A stretch of 18,634 nucleotides of DNA from NCBI GenBank assembly GCA_002794465.1, contig MTSL01000092.1, forward strand, positions 1 through 18,634. The letters are read 5' to 3'. A program made the translations under genes and the position numbers. This DNA is from Paramicrosporidium saccamoebae KSL3. Lineage: Eukaryota > Fungi > Cryptomycota. Shown here piece by piece: positions 1,199 through 18,509 of this stretch. The notes below the pieces were generated by a model. The model was not told the DNA's origin, did not search any database, and saw nothing but the letters and a program-made list of their open reading frames with translations. The first letter of the stretch is position 1; each line of letters opens with the position of its first letter.

Positions 1199-1271
1199 TG
1201 GAGGACCTGGGCATCGATCCCAGTACCCCTCGCATGCTAAGCGAGTGCTCTACCATTTGAGCTAGACCCCC
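1199..1271 (-). tRNA. tRNA-Ala(AGC): tRNA-Ala, anticodon AGC, 73 nt, no intron
   Basis: The minus strand reads GGGGGTC TA GCTC AAATGGTA GAGC A CTCGC TTAGCAT GCGAG GGGTA CTGGG ATCGATG CCCAG GTCCTCC A. It forms a full cloverleaf with the G3:U70 Ala identity pair and the ATCGA T-loop typical of eukaryotic tRNA-Ala. TTTT follows a few nt downstream. Confidence 0.97.
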
Positions 1272-6456: not shown

Positions 6457-9400
6457 ATGTTCCGCATGCTGTGCCAACTACTTTTGATATGGCTGGGAAT
6501 GTCGCTGGCCTCGCCACGACACCCGCTGCCAAAATCAAATTTGCAGTCATTCAGCAAATTATCGATTCCGTCAGGCAGATTGGCCGACGATGACTTGGCA
6601 CTGGCTGATACGCCGTTCCGCGAATATGTCGACTATGCCACGTGGACGCAGTATTTAGCCAAGCAGCTGGTAGCCACCGGGGATGTGGCACGACTGTCAT
6701 CAGCAATCAACCGCCTGCAGGCCCTAAACAGCCGTCTCCGGGGGGCGGACGCCGTCTCAGGGACCCAGGCGATAAAGCGTCTTACCCAGGATCTCTATGA
6801 GCTGCGCATCCGATCAGCCAGTCATCACATGAAGTTTGACCCAAAAGCAGAAGAGGTGTACGACCTAATTGAGCACGGCCATTATAACATTGCCAAAGAA
6901 ATGCTACGCAACATTCTCCACCAAATGGATTACATCAAACTAAGTGCATCGTTAAAGAATGTTGTGATTTTGGAAGGACTAATCCAGTATGATGGGCTAA
7001 ATCCCAAGGCTGTACTGTCTATATGGGAGAACATGTGGAATTTGAGCCAGGATGACAAGGTCTCTGCCCTCATCCGCGCCAAGCAACTATGCTCTGCAAC
7101 TCGCTCAGCCGTGGCAGATCCGCACCATCAGAAAGGCTACCGATGCATTTCCCGAACAAACAATATAGACGCTCGAGTTCTCGTTAACCTTGGACAGGAC
7201 GTGACCAAGCAGTTGGGCGAGCCATACATAAGAGACGATCCTGTAGAGCATCGTCTACTGCAGATGGGAATGGCATATATGAACACGGACTATTGTGCTG
7301 CTCAAACGCATATCCGTACGGCATTGCATATGGCCACTGATCAATTGCGCCGGAAAGAGTTGGAGAGAATCGAAAAACGACTTGGAGAGCAGTGCGTCCG
7401 GAAGCAGTTGGATTCGACATATCGCATGTTCTGTCAGGTTGGTCATGAGGCAGCCTTCCCCATAGGAGAGGCCACTGTCACTAATCCCGTGTCTTCCGTT
7501 GTTGCAACGGCAGAACGTACCTTTTGGACACGTATTGCCATTGGCGATTGCATTTCCGCTCGCAGTGATTTGGAGGCCGTCCGTCGTATTGTGCCAACCA
7601 ATATTATCCACCGTCGCGACTATCTCATCAGTCGCATGGAGTTTATGGAAAGTAGGCTGCGCAAATGTCAGCAAGCTCCCGGTCTCTACGCCAATGGATT
7701 TGGACAACGCATTATGGCATTGCTGCAAAATCGCAATTATCAGGGAGCCTATTGGGTGTGGCAGCAGAACCGAAATCACCCCACTGCTGTAGTATGGCGT
7801 ACTGCCATCCTAGTAGCCCGTTATCCAAAGGTCATTTATGCTCCTTGTACTGGAAACAGTCTTGTCACTGGAGTTCCCAACATGGATCGACAACTATTCG
7901 ATCGATTGGAGGCCCTAATGACTGGTCGAAAGTCGAGTTCATGCGTCCATGAGACTGATAAGGAGCTTTGCAACCTCATTTGGATGCGTGCTGCCTATGT
8001 TACTGGAAGACATCGACTTGTACATCATTACGCGAGACAAATCAGCCGCAGTGCAAAATACTGCGACGAGGCTAACCAGCTAATGGCGTGTCAGTTGCTC
8101 TGTTTCAGTGGTCGCGGCTACTCAGAGGCATGTTCCTCCTTATCAAATTATCAAAGTATGAGCCAACAGGTCCGTTCTGCTCCCCACAATGCCATTGGAC
8201 TAGATCTCGCCACTCGACTCTGTCGCTCTTCAAAGCAAATTGTCTTGGATCCGTTTTACATACGGAATGGCCCTACTCCGCGTCCATTAACCTTTCTCTT
8301 CCGACACTATTTTAAACGCTTTCTGTACGATGGGCAAAGGTCTCTCTTTTCTCCTAAAACCAAGATTCATCCCAGCATGCTCGCTTCTCAGTTGAATGGA
8401 AAAAATACTGTACCCTATTCTAGTCCATCCATTAACTATGCAACTCAAAACTCGCAGACCCCGCAGAACTCGCAGAACCGCCCTCCAGGATTCAATACTA
8501 TCACTCACTATGATCAGAACATGCAACCAATCACGGCGACAACGGCCATTTATGGCAATTCTCATCAATCGTCGCCCATTTCTGCGCTGGGTTCCAACCA
8601 AAAGCTTGTCAAGGGCGGTTGGGATCACTATATGGGACATCAGCGCCATCTCGGCAGTTATCAAAACATTAATGCTCCCCAGATAACTGACCAACAGCGA
8701 CGTGCATTGCTACAGGCTCAGGAGCTTTTGTGTCCATGTTTGGCCAAACACAAGGGACTTATGTTCCAGTGTCGACCAGGCCGAGCCGGTGATCGATGCA
8801 GAGCAGCGAAGAGAAGGTTTATGCAGTCATATCAGAGGAAGAATATGAAAAAGGTTTGTAGCAAGCCCAAATGCAGAATAGTGAAAACGAAATGCAAAAA
8901 GGGCGATAAGAAATGCAAATCAACCCGCCGTGTATGCAGCAAGCCCCAGTGTCGACTCATCCCTAAGCATAATAACAAACGGACAAGCAAGGTCTGTGAA
9001 AAACCCAAATGCAAAATGGTCAAGGTTAAATGCAAAAAGGGCGATAAAAAGTGCAAATCGACAAAACGGGTATGCAGCAAACCCAAGTGCCGATCTGTTA
9101 ATGCCGCTGGAAACGCAAAGACTCGAAGAGTTTGTGAAAAGCCCAAGTGCAGGACGGTCAAGGTCAAATGCAAAAAGGGTGATAAAAAGTGCAAGCCGAC
9201 CAAGCGTGTATGCGGTAAGCCCAAGTGTAGATTGGTTCCCGTTACTGGAAATGCAGGGACACGAAGAGTTTGCGAAAAACCCAAATGTCGGACGATCAAG
9301 GTGAAATGTAAAAAGGGCGATAAAAAGTGCAAACCAACTAAACGTGTCTGCAGCAAGCCCAAGTGCAGGATGATCAAAGTCAAAGGCAAAAAGCAATGCA

Positions 9401-10515
9401 AGTCAACCAAACGCGTTTGCAGCAAGCCCAAGTGTAAGGTTGTCAAGGTCAAGTGCAAAAAGGACGACAAGAAATGTAAGCCAACCAAACGCGTCTGTAG
9501 CAAGCCAAAGTGTAAAATGGTCAATGCGGGCCAGTCATGTTCTACAAACACGGCGCCAGGATCGGCCGGAAGCCGGCTGTTTGGAGAAAAGCTGCTAGGT
9601 AATTGTGATGAAGGAGTGAAGCACGCTTACAAAGCCTTCCTGAAACGCACCGGAAGCTGCGATTGCAAGCCGTGCAACAGCAAAGCCTCGGAAAAGTTCC
9701 TTGTAGACAGCCATGCGTTAGAGGTTGCGGCCAAAATGTTTGCCTCTGGCCAATTGCAATGTCCATGTCTCAAGAAGAGTCTTCTTAAAAAGTATGGAAT
9801 CAACTTTGACAAACTCCAAACCGTGAACATTAGGAAAAGTGGCAACTGTACTTGTAAATGCACACGCAAAAACAAAATTGATCCCTTAAAGGAATGGCGT
9901 CTCCAGAAATTCTGCGAGCGAAAGGGCATCAGAAACGGCAGGAATTGTCAGCTATATAGCAAGAAGCTTATGGAAAAGCACATGAAAAAGCTCCGTTTGC
10001 GTCGTGCTAAACTCCGTGCTACATTAAGAGCAAGGATATTAAAGACGGAACGCTGTCGGGCTCATTACCAAAAGCTCGTCAAAGCGCATGTCCAAAAATG
10101 TCGTGCCCAGGAGAAAAAGAGGATGCAAGCAGTGCGTGCTGAGCAGCAGCGCACAATCCGTATGGCTAAAAAACACGAGGCGCTTGCCAGGAAACACATG
10201 ATAATCCAGAAAAAGTGTCTGGCGGGAATGAGGGCACGAATTGCCAAGATTCAGAAATGTGGCTGCCGCAGGAGGTACCAGAGGAGACAAGTAGTTCCGA
10301 GGAGAAGGATCTGCCGCAAAAAGCAATGTAGACGCCGGGCACTGCGAAGAAAGAAATGTGCCCGAGGACGCCAATGTCGTCGACGAATGTTACAACGCAA
10401 TGCTTTCAGACGATCCCTTTATCGCAACAATCCGGCGCTGTTGAGATATCGCAGACCCTTTAATATCTCGCACTACAAACCTATGTATGGACATCCGAAC
10501 AATGCGCATATATAA
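6457..10515 (+). CDS. Large predicted secreted protein, 1352 aa: signal peptide, helical-repeat-like N-terminal half, Q/N/S linker, Cys/Lys repeat array, Arg/Lys/Cys-rich tail
   Basis: 4-kb intact ORF starting MFRMLCQLLLIWLGMSLA|SPR. No family recognised. Confidence 0.9.
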   Translation: MFRMLCQLLLIWLGMSLASPRHPLPKSNLQSFSKLSIPSGRLADDDLALADTPFREYVDYATWTQYLAKQLVATGDVARLSSAINRLQALNSRLRGADAVSGTQAIKRLTQDLYELRIRSASHHMKFDPKAEEVYDLIEHGHYNIAKEMLRNILHQMDYIKLSASLKNVVILEGLIQYDGLNPKAVLSIWENMWNLSQDDKVSALIRAKQLCSATRSAVADPHHQKGYRCISRTNNIDARVLVNLGQDVTKQLGEPYIRDDPVEHRLLQMGMAYMNTDYCAAQTHIRTALHMATDQLRRKELERIEKRLGEQCVRKQLDSTYRMFCQVGHEAAFPIGEATVTNPVSSVVATAERTFWTRIAIGDCISARSDLEAVRRIVPTNIIHRRDYLISRMEFMESRLRKCQQAPGLYANGFGQRIMALLQNRNYQGAYWVWQQNRNHPTAVVWRTAILVARYPKVIYAPCTGNSLVTGVPNMDRQLFDRLEALMTGRKSSSCVHETDKELCNLIWMRAAYVTGRHRLVHHYARQISRSAKYCDEANQLMACQLLCFSGRGYSEACSSLSNYQSMSQQVRSAPHNAIGLDLATRLCRSSKQIVLDPFYIRNGPTPRPLTFLFRHYFKRFLYDGQRSLFSPKTKIHPSMLASQLNGKNTVPYSSPSINYATQNSQTPQNSQNRPPGFNTITHYDQNMQPITATTAIYGNSHQSSPISALGSNQKLVKGGWDHYMGHQRHLGSYQNINAPQITDQQRRALLQAQELLCPCLAKHKGLMFQCRPGRAGDRCRAAKRRFMQSYQRKNMKKVCSKPKCRIVKTKCKKGDKKCKSTRRVCSKPQCRLIPKHNNKRTSKVCEKPKCKMVKVKCKKGDKKCKSTKRVCSKPKCRSVNAAGNAKTRRVCEKPKCRTVKVKCKKGDKKCKPTKRVCGKPKCRLVPVTGNAGTRRVCEKPKCRTIKVKCKKGDKKCKPTKRVCSKPKCRMIKVKGKKQCKSTKRVCSKPKCKVVKVKCKKDDKKCKPTKRVCSKPKCKMVNAGQSCSTNTAPGSAGSRLFGEKLLGNCDEGVKHAYKAFLKRTGSCDCKPCNSKASEKFLVDSHALEVAAKMFASGQLQCPCLKKSLLKKYGINFDKLQTVNIRKSGNCTCKCTRKNKIDPLKEWRLQKFCERKGIRNGRNCQLYSKKLMEKHMKKLRLRRAKLRATLRARILKTERCRAHYQKLVKAHVQKCRAQEKKRMQAVRAEQQRTIRMAKKHEALARKHMIIQKKCLAGMRARIAKIQKCGCRRRYQRRQVVPRRRICRKKQCRRRALRRKKCARGRQCRRRMLQRNAFRRSLYRNNPALLRYRRPFNISHYKPMYGHPNNAHI
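8854..9540 (+). repeat. Coding tandem array of ten VCxKPxC units alternating 26 aa and 20 aa (46 aa / 138 bp higher-order period)
   Basis: The long unit is e.g. VCEKPKCRTVKVKCKKGDKKCKPTKR and the short unit e.g. VCSKPKCRSVNAAGNAKTRR. One unit is 23 aa and the last is partial. Confidence 0.95.
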
Positions 10516-11501: not shown

Positions 11502-12066
11502 GCAGCCTTGTAAGATAAAGTATTTATTTTGATTTGATTCAGTCGCATAGTGAGGTAAGTACTATAGTCTCTGCCGAATGGGATGATTTTGCATTTCTAA
11601 AATTAAACTTTTAAAGAACAAGAACAATCACGGATACAGCCAAATGTAGACTTGTTCCTCCACGTAAGTGTTTAGCTAATCATTCTATTAGTCTGCAGTA
11701 TGGTACTTGTTTGTGTGATGCAAATCTACTCATAATGACTTTATTAGCAGCGCCCTTTAATAGAGCCATCCTTTGGAAGTCTCAAAGTTCCGTGTCGTGC
11801 ATGGTCGAGATCACAAGCAATGTATATCACACTGATAGTTTTGATCGGCTTTCGATTCTCCAAATCCTCACCTCACTTTACGGTTAGAGTCGCTCTTGGG
11901 TTTGCTATATACCACCCCACCGGCTGATATTCTACACTCAAATCAAATTCAAACCCCGCTTAAACACGATTATAAAGTTTTTTGTAAGACTTTAATTATT
12001 TGCACGATTGGGCTGATTTGAGGCAAAGGGTTTACTATGGCCTTTATGTTCTTGAGTACTAATCCT

Positions 12067-13316
12067 CTATATCTTTATGCCTGCTACTTTTATTACTAAC
12101 ACGTCTGGCATCTTTGCCGCCGGTCTCTGCGTCTGCATTAGCGTTAGTGACATCATTATTGCTAACACAAACACAGAGACCGACGGTAAAAGTGACAAAC
12201 GCAGTGATAATAAGCAATCCGAGTGCGTTAATCCGCGGCCCATCGTGCGATATCGGCAGGTCTCGCATTTCCTAGCCCGCGAGTTGATGTGCCACAATGC
12301 CTCCTCTGCCTTTTGAAGGGCCTTCCCTTTATTGGCAGGCCGGAATCCACACAACCGGCATTCTGCATGGTCCCCCTTCAGGTACCAGCGCTCCAGCCGG
12401 GGCCCGCTGGATTGCTCGGGTACTGGGCTGGGGGGACTACTCTCCAGAGACTCTGAGATTTTGTCTTCTAGATTTGAAGGAGAATCATCCTTCTTGGGGG
12501 GCTTTGGCAGATGGGCCTCCACCCAGGGATCTGCGGCATGTACAGCAATTATTGCTCTACACAGCTCCTGCCCCACTTCGCGGCCTACGCGCCCAAGAGC
12601 CAGTAATGTGAGGTCCCGTTTTAGTTCGGGACTAAGCACATCATGGGACCAGATGTACTCGACTGCAGCGAGTATCTCAGCCTCACTCGTCCCACTGCAC
12701 TGTTTGAGCACGATGGCACACTCGACAAACCACCGGCGATAATCGGCGGCTTGGGTTGGCTCAACAAAAAGCAACAGCGCGGCCTTCTTGCCAAAGCTTC
12801 CCACGTTGTTGAGCTTTAGCCCGTGGAGGCATTCACGTTTGAAGTCTTCTAGGCCGAGCTTGGAACACTTGTCCCATGAGCTCCAGGGGGAGCTCACGAA
12901 TCAGTGATTCGTCTATTCCTCGGTAATTCTTGATGGCAATCTACAAAAATAAGCAATCTTGAATTATGGCAAACTTTCAATGCTTGGTTAAAAGTTACCG
13001 CCGCATCCCATGACCCTTCGGGATGCATCTCTTTCAACATTCCATCGAGCTGGGTCTGCTGACGATGCTTGCACGTGAGACAGCCCCACAGCGCTCCAAG
13101 GGCGACCAGCACTAAAGCCGCTCCAATCCCGAAAGACCAAAGAGCCCCATCCGTTGCAGCAACCGGCCCACAGAACAGCACCACGAGACAGGACATGAAT
13201 CCCAGAATGCTCAGCCATCCGCCCCTCTCTTGTACACTTACCACACCAGCAATGAGGGCCCCCAGCCCAGTCGCACAAGCACAGATCAGAGCAAAGACAA
13301 TGGCAATGACATTCAT
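12067..13316 (-). CDS. Probable single spliced gene, complement(join(12067..12848,12898..12940,12999..13316)), 380 aa: 3-TM N-terminus, helical region, Cys/His putative Zn-binding motif
   Basis: ORF 12894-13316 gives three hydrophobic helices. ORF 12067-12897 has no ATG start and carries CRLC...H...CETC. Two GT-AG introns (58 nt and 49 nt) join the two in frame. The exon structure is inferred. Confidence 0.5.
12089..12214. repeat. 126-bp ungapped degenerate palindrome (fold-back)
   Basis: Position i pairs with 24303-i. Of 62 positions, 43 are Watson-Crick, 16 differ by transitions and 3 by transversions. Confidence 0.9.
12849..12897 (-). other. Candidate 49-nt intron, phase 1
   Basis: GTGAGC...CCTAG; the 3n+1 length restores the frame into ORF 12067-12897. 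The branch site is weak (GCTCAT) and two AAG would have to be skipped. Confidence 0.35.
12941..12998 (-). other. Candidate 58-nt intron, phase 0
   Basis: GTAACT...GCTTAT TTTTGTAG, AT-rich relative to the flanking coding sequence. Confidence 0.6.
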
Positions 13317-15662: not shown

Positions 15663-18509
15663 CTATGCGGCAGGATGTGATTGACGCTGTTTTAGTTTGG
15701 CTTTGGCATCGTTTATCTTGTTAAAGTCCCCGATCCGCTTCTCGAGCTGTTTCAAAAATGACAAATGTGCCATTGGCCGTAAGGCAGGCATTTTGTCAGG
15801 ATGAATGCCCAAGAACATTCTGATAACGAGATCTACAATCGCCGTCTTTGTGTCCGGTGTCCGGCCTCCAAACTGTTTGTCTACCTTTCCGAGCAGCTGG
15901 GCCTCTAGGTTTGTGTCGTATTGGAGGATAATCTTTACGTAATCGCCCTGTTGGTTTCGACCATAACCCTTTGAGTATCTATAGGGCTTTTCCAACAAAT
16001 GGCGATACACACTTGTAAGGAATTGGTTTGGCTCACTAGTATGGTGGCTCTCAGGAAGCGTAGCAAGGTCTGGTTGGGTAGAGGCAAGATATATCCCATA
16101 CACCATGGGCGACACCTTCCCATCAATCCACTGCCGGATAGCCATCTTGTCGCGATGTTCGCCACACAATATTGCCATGTCAAGCAACGAATGCAGATTC
16201 TTGTCAAGTAGAATTTTGTAATTTTCACGGAATAGACCAAGAAGACTCTGTGCCATGTCCATCTGGTTCTTGCGTTCCTTGCCACCTCTGAAATACAAAT
16301 TTCGGTTAGAGTGCCTATTATGTTCCTTCATAATGCGCCCAGAGATTAGCGATTTTTTGACGACAATGTTTAGAGCCTCGGCAAATTTTTCCATGTTCAT
16401 AAATTTATCTCTAATTGATGCCATGTTGCATACGACATTACAATCGCGAAAAGCAAGACGAAAGAAGATGCAATTCAACTCTTGTTTTGGCTGGATGAGA
16501 CTCTGATTCTCATTAAGGACTTCAAGAACATCCACGGCTTCCTTGGGATTGATTTTCGCCAAGGAATAGTACATTTCTGCAAAGTAGTCCAAATCCTTGT
16601 AAAAGCTGACTCCCAGCATTTTATCGGCATAGAATGAGTCGAAACGCTCATCTTGAAATAGCATTGCCGAAAATGACCCAGATATGAACGGAGAATCTAC
16701 GAGCTTGACAATGTCGCTCATGTGGGAGTCTTCTAGCTCGTAATTCCCGAGACGTCGGAGCAAAATGTACAATGCGCCTTCACTAGATGCCGCTACGGCT
16801 TGCTGGATTAGACCCACATACTCCTCACAATCAAAACTATCGACTAGAAGCTTTTTAAATTCGCGATACTCACCCATGTTGATATGTGTGAATGAGGGAA
16901 GCTGGACCAGCTTGATGGTTTGCGCAGTGGCCTCGCCAAATTGCTTCTCTTCCTGAGGCGTCTTGAAGAGTGACGTTACCCTCCTGATTGCACGACTTAT
17001 CCCTGTGATCATTTTGGCAAACTTGTCTGTAATGGAAGAGTACATTTTCCCAAAGAATCCCGAGACCTGGATCCCAGCGTAAGAGTTAAAGATAATGTTT
17101 CTAAAATCAAGCGCATCCAGAAGATTCACAACTGTGGTGAATACCGGAATGACGGCGCCCATCCCAGTGAGCTGAAGGGAGGCCAATGTGAGGATAAACA
17201 TCCAGGTGCTAATTCCGTAAGGATCGTTCTTCAGTTTGGAGGCAATGCTCATTAGCCCACCAACGTTCCCCACAGAAAAGAATGCAATGTGGGAGGTTGT
17301 TGTTGCAGCAAGTACGCTCCCTTGCATCGCGGCGTTAATGGTCGCCGTGGCTTGAGGAAGCGATTTTTGCAGCGAATAGAGCGAAGTGAACAAAGATACT
17401 GCTTTCTCGATATTACGAGTCTTGAGATTTACAGAAGCACCAACGGCTGTTTGGATCGCTGGCTGGTCAGAGACAACCGGAGCCAGTGACTGCGTGTTGG
17501 GCGTAGACGCTGCACTGCTTATAGGATACAGCGTCTGTACAGCCAAAGAGCTCCCATGCACCTGCGTTCCTTGGGTTTCCTGCTCAGGAGTATCCAGTTG
17601 TTCATAATCCTCCTCCTGCCGTCTGTCCAGCTCCACGTTCCTACTCATTTGCTCTCCTGCATCCCTTTGGTCTGCCAGGAGTTGTGCACGGTATTCTCTT
17701 TCTTTTTGCTGCTCAACTAAAAGACGCTGTGCTTCCAGCGCGTGCCGTCGTCTTTGCAATCCAGCTGCTTCTTGCTGAGTAAGACCCTGTGACTGGGCAT
17801 AGTTTGGCGTTTCAGTATTTCTCTGTATTGGATCTGTTTGCTGATACCGTCTCTGCGTTTGGGTTGTTTGTTGGTACTGTCTCTGCATTTGAGCTGCTTG
17901 TTGCTGAGCAAGACGTTGTGCCTCGGCAGATCTTTGTTCTTCAGCACGCCTCTGCATCTCTATTGCATGCATTTGAGTTGCTTGGTGCTGAGCAAGACGC
18001 TGTGCTTCGGCATATTTCTGTGCTTCAGCATTCCTTTGAGCTTGAGCTGCTTGTTGAAACTGTCTCTGCGTTTCCATCGCACGCATTTGAGCCGCTTGTT
18101 GATCAGCAAAATGCTTCTCTTCAGAACGTCTCTGCATTTCCATTGCACGCATTTGGGCCTCGGGGTTCAAAGTCATTGGTGGTGAATTTCCACGTTTTGC
18201 CTGAAGTAGTGCCTGTGCCTCCTGTGCTTGCGCCTTCTGGGCCTCTTTTTGGCGTTCTATCATCTGCTTGTGTGACATTGTCGGTGCAGAATACCTTGTG
18301 CCAGATACTTGAGACTGTTGGACTGTACCTGGTCTTGGCTGGATAATCATCGGCTGTTGTACCATCTGCGGGACAGAGGTAGAACTAGTGGGATGTGATA
18401 CCGTATGCCTCCATGTGTCAATAATCCTGGTCCTTCCGCCAGTTCCGGGTACATTGGCTGTAGAGATAGCCTCGAGTAGACAAATTACAACTAACGCTAC
18501 CGCTTTCAT
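15663..18509 (-). CDS. Predicted secreted protein, 948 aa: Q/A-rich repeats, hydrophobic helical segment, helical C-terminal domain
   Basis: 2.8-kb intact ORF starting MKAVALVVICLLEAISTA|NV. No family recognised. Confidence 0.88.
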   Translation of the reverse strand: MKAVALVVICLLEAISTANVPGTGGRTRIIDTWRHTVSHPTSSTSVPQMVQQPMIIQPRPGTVQQSQVSGTRYSAPTMSHKQMIERQKEAQKAQAQEAQALLQAKRGNSPPMTLNPEAQMRAMEMQRRSEEKHFADQQAAQMRAMETQRQFQQAAQAQRNAEAQKYAEAQRLAQHQATQMHAIEMQRRAEEQRSAEAQRLAQQQAAQMQRQYQQTTQTQRRYQQTDPIQRNTETPNYAQSQGLTQQEAAGLQRRRHALEAQRLLVEQQKEREYRAQLLADQRDAGEQMSRNVELDRRQEEDYEQLDTPEQETQGTQVHGSSLAVQTLYPISSAASTPNTQSLAPVVSDQPAIQTAVGASVNLKTRNIEKAVSLFTSLYSLQKSLPQATATINAAMQGSVLAATTTSHIAFFSVGNVGGLMSIASKLKNDPYGISTWMFILTLASLQLTGMGAVIPVFTTVVNLLDALDFRNIIFNSYAGIQVSGFFGKMYSSITDKFAKMITGISRAIRRVTSLFKTPQEEKQFGEATAQTIKLVQLPSFTHINMGEYREFKKLLVDSFDCEEYVGLIQQAVAASSEGALYILLRRLGNYELEDSHMSDIVKLVDSPFISGSFSAMLFQDERFDSFYADKMLGVSFYKDLDYFAEMYYSLAKINPKEAVDVLEVLNENQSLIQPKQELNCIFFRLAFRDCNVVCNMASIRDKFMNMEKFAEALNIVVKKSLISGRIMKEHNRHSNRNLYFRGGKERKNQMDMAQSLLGLFRENYKILLDKNLHSLLDMAILCGEHRDKMAIRQWIDGKVSPMVYGIYLASTQPDLATLPESHHTSEPNQFLTSVYRHLLEKPYRYSKGYGRNQQGDYVKIILQYDTNLEAQLLGKVDKQFGGRTPDTKTAIVDLVIRMFLGIHPDKMPALRPMAHLSFLKQLEKRIGDFNKINDAKAKLKQRQSHPAA
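17830..18165 (-). repeat. Coding Q/A-rich imperfect repeats (AQMRAMEMQR and AEAQRLAQQQAAQM types)
   Basis: AQMRAMEMQRR, AAQMRAMETQRQ, ATQMHAIEMQRR and AEAQRLAQ (twice). The repeats are also visible in the DNA (gctgagcaagacg twice; tctgcatttc/tctgcgtttc). Confidence 0.85.

Follow-up and report, generated by a model that had tools for sequence, protein, structure and literature searches.

Among described systems, the closest to the element reported here are the inverted duplications that arise by snap-back or template-switch synthesis (fold-back inversions and palindromes at breaks), with which it shares adjacent inverted arms, the lack of a spacer and of a target-site duplication, and occurrence as a single copy. 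It differs from them in that the short inverted repeat which would have seeded the duplication is no longer recognisable after 32% divergence, and in that the ancestral arm is not identifiable, the homology of the gene tail not rising above composition. A second group comprises mirtrons, tailed mirtrons and fungal miRNA-like precursors, which likewise have a stable hairpin of ~60–130 nt tied to a short intron. A third comprises miniature inverted-repeat transposable elements (MITEs) and foldback transposons, with which the element has terminal inverted arms and small size in common.

The biology of introns provides further points of comparison. If the intron annotated at this locus is real, then the likeness to introner-like elements, and to intron gain by duplication in general, is that of a lineage-specific gain at a duplicated, structure-prone sequence. 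Introner-like elements, however, form multicopy families, whereas the present case is a single-copy inverted sequence with a putative intron; and where the classical duplication model of intron gain invokes tandem AGGT duplications, the duplication here is inverted. In yeast, there are structures which mask splice sites, and the stem described below would similarly bury a 5′ splice site, a branch point and a 3′ splice site. The yeast masking stems are shorter and are conserved, whereas the stem of the fold-back is known from the sequence of one locus.

The fold-back is situated in the 3′ tail of the gene PSACC_01209 of Paramicrosporidium saccamoebae, a part of the gene that is not conserved, and spans the annotated last intron. 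It is judged here, with a probability of about 0.6, to be the relic of one old local inverted duplication that has since been drifting neutrally. As such it would illustrate cleanly, in a single copy, that the 3′ end of a fast-evolving gene can be rewritten when a local stretch is duplicated in inverted orientation: three reading frames become open together, and any transcript acquires a strong hairpin.

Geometry of the fold-back

The window, by which is meant the whole stretch of DNA that was analysed, is contig MTSL01000092.1 of assembly GCA_002794465.1 from P. saccamoebae KSL3, and is 18,634 bases long. The organism is a rozellomycotan parasite that lives inside amoeba nuclei (PMC5701793). 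The genome assembly was built in Velvet on Illumina reads obtained without whole-genome amplification, and the annotation used MAKER and Augustus trained on Rhizopus, with keep_preds=1 and Trinity transcripts as evidence; the repeat content is 0.53%, chiefly simple repeats (PMC5701793).

Within this window, positions 12089–12214 form an imperfect palindrome of 126 bp, centred on 12151/12152, which is gapless and has abutting arms without a spacer. An initial reading made from the sequence alone (hereafter the sequence-only reading) had placed a gapless fold-back at these positions, and a recount finds it in the same place. The parts of the structure, named for the sense RNA, are as follows.

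12152–12214, minus strand: 5′ arm; 38% GC; its last 49 nt lie within the annotated intron, and its read-through frame encodes the hydrophobic LLSLRLSLLPSVSVFVLAIMM
12089–12151, minus strand: 3′ arm; 49% GC; its first 19 nt are the 3′ end of the annotated intron, the remainder lying in the annotated last exon
12117–12186, minus strand: hairpin core; 26 consecutive pairs (21 Watson–Crick and 5 G-U) around an 18-nt imperfect apical region

Pairing of 12089–12151 with 12152–12214 gives 63 columns, made up of 43 Watson–Crick pairs, 17 transitions and 3 transversions, such that the arms are 68% complementary (43/63). The sequence-only reading had the same numbers of Watson–Crick pairs and transversions, but its 62 columns and 16 transitions become 63 and 17. 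In RNA, 11 of the transitions are G-U pairs on the minus (sense) strand and 6 on the plus strand, with 54 of the 63 columns paired on the minus strand; of the earlier values the 6 is retained, while 10 G-U pairs and 53/62 paired columns on the minus strand are replaced. The longest unbroken minus-strand stem is of 26 bp and pairs 12161–12186 with 12117–12142, making the 22-bp run first proposed (12121–12142 with 12161–12182) too short.

An independent repeat search recovers the arms as 12090–12150 and 12153–12213, at 70% complementarity, and finds no second inverted repeat of comparable kind elsewhere in the 18.6-kb window. The complementarity of the arms ends sharply on both sides, with matches in 5 of 24 flanking columns. 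As the sequence-only reading had remarked, no target-site duplication is evident, the left flank (gcctgctact) and the right flank (caatccgagt) having no direct repeat in common.

Stability of the hairpin

The fold is highly stable in RNA of either strand. RNAfold gives −60.8 kcal/mol for the minus strand (z = −8.5) and −51.5 kcal/mol for the plus strand (z = −8.3), and for each strand none of 200 dinucleotide shuffles folds as well. This comparison with shuffles, which the sequence-only reading had set as a check, is thus significant on both strands, and a transcript of either strand would still form a strong hairpin. The 26-bp core persists when folded within a context of 341 nt. When 4,114 segments of 126 nt from both strands were ranked, those of the hairpin occupied the places from second onward, with a nearby GC-rich segment tied first. 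The fold is weaker when computed for single-stranded DNA (−20.8 kcal/mol, z = −3.4).

These values bear directly on whether the palindrome is a chance resemblance or an artefact of assembly. The binomial tail for at least 43 matches in 63 is ~1e-12 to 1e-10 per centre, which corresponds to ~2e-5 such palindromes expected by chance in the genome of 7.3 Mb, and the shuffles do not reproduce the fold. With regard to assembly, chimeric artefacts are exact whereas the arms here differ at 20 sites, and since the Velvet assembly was made from unamplified Illumina data and the arms are diverged, a chimera is not to be expected. Either explanation is therefore of negligible likelihood.

The gene PSACC_01209 and its family

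A protein search with the minus-strand open reading frame (ORF) that ends in the fold-back returned a single match, the hypothetical protein PSACC_01209. The deposited gene model, the exons of which were obtained by mapping the deposited protein to the window, and the main ORF are as follows.

12059–13316, minus strand: gene PSACC_01209, deposited model; 360 aa, 4 exons
13316–12999, 12940–~12899, ~12848–12201 and 12132–12059, minus strand: deposited exons
12067–12897, minus strand: main long ORF; 276 codons, with the conserved family core and CxxC...CxxC; its last 49 codons are read-through of the hairpin

An exhaustive HMMER search yields 50 relatives of PSACC_01209. Exact look-ups identify at least seven of the family as P. 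saccamoebae paralogues (PSACC_00971, 02139, 00204, 00329, 00099/01702 and 03368) and place further members on short JGI metagenome contigs. From these sequences, the multigene family appears to be known only from P. saccamoebae and its JGI metagenome relatives. Its members begin with membrane helices at the N-terminus, continue into a helical core, and carry at the C-terminal end the motif W-Y-x-x-G-x-x-x-E-C-R-x-C...C-x-x-C-x-Y-R-T, beyond which comes a tail. No assignment for the family results from Pfam, PDB-sequence or profile searches; word-indexed protein searches with family alignments return three proteins apiece, an alignment-based locus scan with the family finds no relative, and an AlphaFold model from a 5-sequence alignment (pLDDT 48) is too poor for use.

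The deposited model was checked against a family HMM built without PSACC_01209, which matches three minus-strand frames. Two further features are needed at this point.

12941–12974, minus strand: inferred 34-nt intron; GTTTGC...TTTGTAG; restores colinearity with the family
12849–12897, minus strand: annotated intron 2; 49 nt; deletes the family-conserved RELPLELMGQVFQAR; a frame break with a 6-codon gap underlies it at ~12854–12862

Annotated intron 1 (58 nt), which the deposited model has in place of the 34-nt intron, deletes VTFNQALK, a segment that aligns with conserved residues of the family. The 34-nt intron has a counterpart in a metagenome relative (locus L004), where an intron of the same length (GTTCAT...TTTGTAG) stands at the matching position, ~nt 825–858, and is identical at 21 of 34 bases. 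The lineage uses conserved 34-nt introns which a predictor trained on Rhizopus has missed. At ~12854–12862, the homology shifts frame across the 6-codon gap, with no space for an intron. In other words, when set against the family, the deposited model is demonstrably wrong at both intron 1 and intron 2, and because these upstream introns are wrong the last intron of the same model is unreliable on annotation alone.

The frame break at ~12854–12862 is either a frame-shifting deletion, as in a pseudogene, or an assembly indel. PSACC_01209 may accordingly be a pseudogene, and on the alignment the break and the 6-codon gap relative to the family do argue for decay of this copy. In this regard, the relative in L004/L005 has a frame break of its own, in a G6 run, which is present in two samples, such that decaying copies may be common in the family. 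As the 276-codon ORF downstream of the break is still intact, any pseudogenisation, if real, would be recent.

The annotated last intron and the protein tail

The sequences that the fold-back contributes to the gene depend on which frame is read through it, and three frames are open over the hairpin, namely the main ORF, minus-strand frame 0 and a plus-strand ORF. The features concerned are as follows.

12133–12200, minus strand: annotated terminal intron 3; 68 nt, GTTTGT...CACTAACGCTAATGCAG; wholly within the fold-back
12059–12268, minus strand: frame 0 ORF; 69 codons, overlapping the main ORF; the hairpin is codon-aligned and the end is the annotated last exon (AETGGKDARRVSNKSSRHKDIED)
12077–12316, plus strand: mirror ORF; 79 codons; antisense codon-aligned image of frame 0

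The palindrome is codon-aligned in frame 0 and in the plus-strand ORF, at 21 codons per arm, and this is the reason for the near-identical peptides on the two strands; the sequence-only reading had attributed those peptides to the symmetry of the palindrome, and the register of 21 + 21 codons bears it out. The plus-strand ORF owes its openness solely to being the antisense, codon-aligned counterpart of minus-strand frame 0. It is a mirror image and does not point to a gene.

The main ORF, if read through to 12067, ends in ...CLLSLRLSLLPSVSVFVLAIMMSLTLMQTQRPAAKMPDVLVIKVAGIKI, and in this read-through form the earlier suggestion that the fold-back supplies the C-terminus of the protein holds; in the deposited model it does not, since there the 68-nt intron is spliced out of the hairpin, and the 5′ arm thereby loses 49 nt and the 3′ arm 19 nt. 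The annotated intron is either a true splice or a gene predictor's bridge between two open frames.

Were the splice true, the inverted duplication could have created, or could now gate, a real spliceosomal intron of 68 nt. In that case GTTTGT, the 5′ splice site, would come from the new 5′ arm, and the branch point and AG from the loop-proximal part of the 3′ arm; splicing would excise most of the inserted hydrophobic-coding arm to leave a hydrophilic tail, and the stem, in which both splice sites are buried, would determine the proportions of the spliced and the retained isoform. Several features are in keeping with this. The intron does not extend beyond the fold-back, and its signals are canonical, with CACTAAC 11 nt upstream of CAG and with spacings usual for introns of this organism (its 68 nt compare with the 34-nt intron of the same gene and with a 72-nt intron in an HMG-box gene); its 19 nt of 3′ arm hold the branch-point-like CACTAAC/GCTAAT followed by that CAG. 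Its 5′ site belongs to the GTTTGY type, like the one in the 34-nt intron that the family supports in this gene; patterns of the form GT...CTxAY...YAG number 8 in the contig, fewer than the 14.4 ± 4.2 expected from shuffles. The annotated spliced tail, with a GRAVY of −1.19, is within the range of the family, and the codon-usage score of the 5′ arm is below that of the 3′ arm in both frames. At the position of 12200–12133, the metagenome relatives and the paralogue PSACC_03368 are contiguous and have no intron; hence the intron, if real, is a gain, and it would provide a case of an intron acquired through inverted duplication in a lineage close to the base of the Microsporidia, a setting in which introns are as a rule lost.

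Against this stand the retention of ab initio models in the annotation (keep_preds=1, with Augustus trained on Rhizopus), the wrong introns 1 and 2 of the same model, and the distribution of the mismatches between the arms, of which 6 fall within the putative splice signals against 5.1 expected, which amounts to no enrichment. From what is known of yeast, moreover, a stem of −60 kcal/mol that hides both splice sites and the branch point is expected to block splicing, and if the upstream frame break is real then the region is untranslated. Overall, the birth or gating of an intron here, though the leading alternative, is unlikely. Its fullest form, in which an intron was born from a single inverted duplication whose arms supply the sites, the spliced tail being family-like and the 26-bp stem tuning the balance between the spliced form and a retained, anchor-tailed form, must be considered a little more doubtful again.

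The tails of the family put the two candidate C-termini in context. Beyond the second CxxC the tails are unalignable, run from 15 to 117 aa and are hydrophilic, with GRAVY values of −1.22 to +0.17 and a highest 19-residue hydropathy window of 1.22; being unalignable and so variable in length, they are under weak constraint. The read-through tail of PSACC_01209 is a hydrophobic outlier, at a GRAVY of +0.66 and with a TM-like 19-residue window of 2.19. Shuffle-controlled comparison of each candidate C-terminus with the family tails reveals no homology beyond composition, and codon-usage likelihood permits no choice between the read-through and annotated frames.

It is in principle conceivable that this outlier is itself the product of selection, the read-through 5′ arm having been exapted to encode a C-terminal hydrophobic helix that acts as a tail anchor. 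The main ORF is indeed open through both arms to 12067, and a hydrophobic stretch of 20 residues is encoded by the 5′ arm, where six of the mismatch sites have T in the second codon position. No such helix, however, is found in any of 28 family tails, the codon-usage score of the 5′ arm is slightly negative, and the read-through frame has no third-position excess of mismatches: over the three codon-position pairing classes these fall 8/5/7, identically in every frame. The openness of three frames, moreover, follows simply from the palindrome. Exaptation as coding sequence is accordingly improbable.

Apparent neutrality of the pairing

The sequence-only reading had proposed that the hairpin is kept by selection which tolerates G-U pairs. 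The tests of the mismatches leave this proposal unsupported. The transitions divide 11:6 between sense G-U and sense A-C, from which no strand preference can be discerned (p = 0.33). When the transitions are swapped at random between the arms, the minimum free energy of the minus strand is at least as good in 20% of trials, and that of either strand in 52%. To this may be added the lack of codon-position bias noted above and the sub-threshold Rfam matches given below. The 26-bp run is borderline, at p ~0.05 with positions shuffled to 0.08 with orientation randomised, and was chosen post hoc. In sum, every test run came out neutral, which suggests neutrality of the arm mismatches.

With respect to the type of substitution, transitions make up 17 of 20 mismatches (0.85), an excess that is not exceptional beside the fraction of 0.64–0.73 in duplicates from the same contig, for which the repeats of a KPKC array served; the corresponding probability of at least 17 in 20 is 0.04–0.17. 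Their contexts are 7 CpA, 7 CpT, 2 CpG and 1 CpC. Hypermutation by a RIP-like process or by deamination of 5-methylcytosine was considered on this basis and rejected, there being neither a RIP-like concentration in CpA nor a 5mC-like one in CpG. The other proposal of the sequence-only reading, an old inverted duplication eroded by deamination, fits all the data as regards the duplication, while its deamination component is without a positive signature in the contexts.

A hairpin of this kind could also serve as a precursor of small RNAs, being a miRNA-like, hairpin-siRNA or mirtron-like substrate of Dicer. It is stable, is of precursor size, has the 26-bp core and gives weak Rfam matches to models of plant miRNA precursors. 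The best of these (MIR158) scores 23.6 bits against a gathering score of 67, no family reaches its gathering threshold, and matches at ~23 bits arise equally from both strands, such that they are generic. As for mirtrons, the intron occupies positions 15–82 of the 126-nt hairpin in the sense RNA, and the ends of the hairpin are therefore off the splice sites. Unlike in a mirtron, the pairing partner of the 5′ splice site lies 30 nt further downstream than the 3′ splice site, and the excised intron is unstructured (−13.8 kcal/mol alone, z = −1.1); the mirtron assignment was rejected on these grounds. Further against a small-RNA precursor are the lack of a strand-specific preference for G-U pairs and the fact that RNAi genes of P. 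saccamoebae are not mentioned in the genome literature searched. Such a role is very unlikely.

Origin of the fold-back

In the sequence searched, neither arm resembles anything but the other. A degenerate 22-mer common to the two has no further match in the window, and none in a second P. saccamoebae contig (20 kb), in the loci of the relatives, or in collections of metagenome, viral and prokaryotic sequence; in Smith–Waterman alignments, each arm against the rest of the window and against L002–L004 is at shuffle level, as are the arms at chance similarity to the region coding for the N-terminal membrane helices of the family. No fold-back is present at the 3′ end of PSACC_03368 or of any of three metagenome relatives. 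An imperfect palindrome whose arms are similar to each other alone, the fold-back has the features of a local inverted duplication.

The same searches bear on insertion of a foldback or miniature inverted-repeat transposable element into the tail of the gene, for which the unit of two inverted arms with sharp ends might speak. In contrast to such elements, it has no target-site duplication, no further copy exists in the ~39 kb of P. saccamoebae sequence or the collections scanned, the genome is poor in repeats (0.53%), and the arms abut with no internal spacer. A transposable origin is thus most improbable.

The preferred reading, that of a single inverted duplication, envisages the following course. 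Snap-back or template-switch synthesis likely copied ~63 nt of the 3′ tail of the gene in reverse, and the copy would have been placed right beside the original, with no spacer. The event would have struck the fast-evolving, non-conserved tail of PSACC_01209, after which the arms would have drifted to their present complementarity through the ordinary, transition-rich substitutions of the genome. A single event of this type is the simplest account because the palindrome is spacer-less, lacks a target-site duplication and is single-copy. It must be set against this that 20 substitutions with no indels in 126 nt are slightly tidier than neutral decay would lead one to expect (P estimated at ~0.1–0.4 from typical indel:substitution ratios).

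Some observations sit less comfortably with a neutral relic. The sense stem of 26 bp is borderline unusual (p ~0.05–0.08). The signals of the annotated intron are good, and a hydrophilic, family-like spliced tail would be compatible with the hairpin and the intron being functionally connected. Past the frame break, the ORF of 276 codons has also remained intact.

Beyond PSACC_01209, the window contains the C-terminus of a VWA-domain protein, several lineage-specific ORFs, an HMG-box gene with a 72-nt intron, and one tRNA-Ala, which is the sole Rfam match above threshold in the window.

The PSACC_01209 family

PSACC_01209 (12059-13316, minus strand), the gene whose 3' tail contains the fold-back, is a member of an uncharacterised multigene family, without a match in either Pfam or the PDB, whose proteins combine membrane helices at the N-terminus with a helical core and a CxxC...CxxC motif. 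At least seven paralogues are present in P. saccamoebae (PSACC_00971, 02139, 00204, 00329, 00099/01702 and 03368), and further relatives are found in JGI metagenomes.

Gene model, short introns and frame breaks

Comparison with the family bears on the deposited model of PSACC_01209 at the following places:

12941-12998 (-): deposited intron 1, 58 nt
12974..12941 (-): 34-nt intron, GTTTGC...TTTGTAG
12849-12897 (-): annotated intron 2
~12854-12862 (-): frame jump and 6-codon gap relative to the family

As deposited, intron 1 cuts away the family-conserved codons VTFNQALK, and it is with the 34-nt intron that colinearity with the family is regained. A 34-nt counterpart lies at the same position in the relative on metagenome contig L004 (~825-858), where 21 of the 34 bases are identical. 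It seems that ultra-short conserved introns, overlooked by annotation, are in use in the P. saccamoebae lineage.

Annotated intron 2 similarly entails the loss of conserved coding sequence, RELPLELMGQVFQAR. The frame jump and gap leave too little space for an intron, and PSACC_01209 may be a pseudogene, or there may be an assembly indel at this point. The L004 relative also changes frame, within a G6 run at ~1029-1034, and the identical frame-shifted sequence is carried by a second metagenome contig, L005, the two contigs coming from two samples (3300042203 and 3300042204). This is an indication that decay of gene copies is widespread in the family.

Other foldable sequences

A GC-rich stretch at 12313-12465 (+) lies just upstream of the hairpin at 12089-12214, within a conserved exon. 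In a contig-wide scan, 126-nt windows in this stretch equal the raw fold energy of the hairpin (-60.8 kcal/mol), although they do so as branched structures, unlike the single fold-back of the hairpin. A second, unrelated hairpin, seemingly intergenic, is found close to the start of another P. saccamoebae contig (MTSL01000206.1; positions 19845-19910 of the stretch L006), with 28-nt arms that are 96% complementary around a 10-nt loop. This repeat-poor genome has short local inverted repeats elsewhere too.

Other ORFs and a tRNA gene of the window

6457-10515 (+): ORF of 1,352 codons, signal-peptide-like start
15663-18509 (-): ORF of 948 codons, signal-peptide-like start, glutamine/alanine-rich repeat region, no match in Pfam
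1199-1271 (-): tRNA-Ala (AGC), the sole Rfam match at gathering threshold in the whole window

The 1,352-codon ORF differs from the deposited model (1,258 aa) and contains a tandem array (8890-9462, periods of 138 nt and 69 nt) encoding cysteine- and lysine-rich units in alternation (KPKCR.VKVKCKKGDKKCK.TKRVCS / KPKCR...RRVCE), the repeats of which served as the yardstick for the transition:transversion ratio. The repeats of the 948-codon ORF, at 17820-17903, are AQRLAQQQAAQMQR-like units with a 30-nt period.
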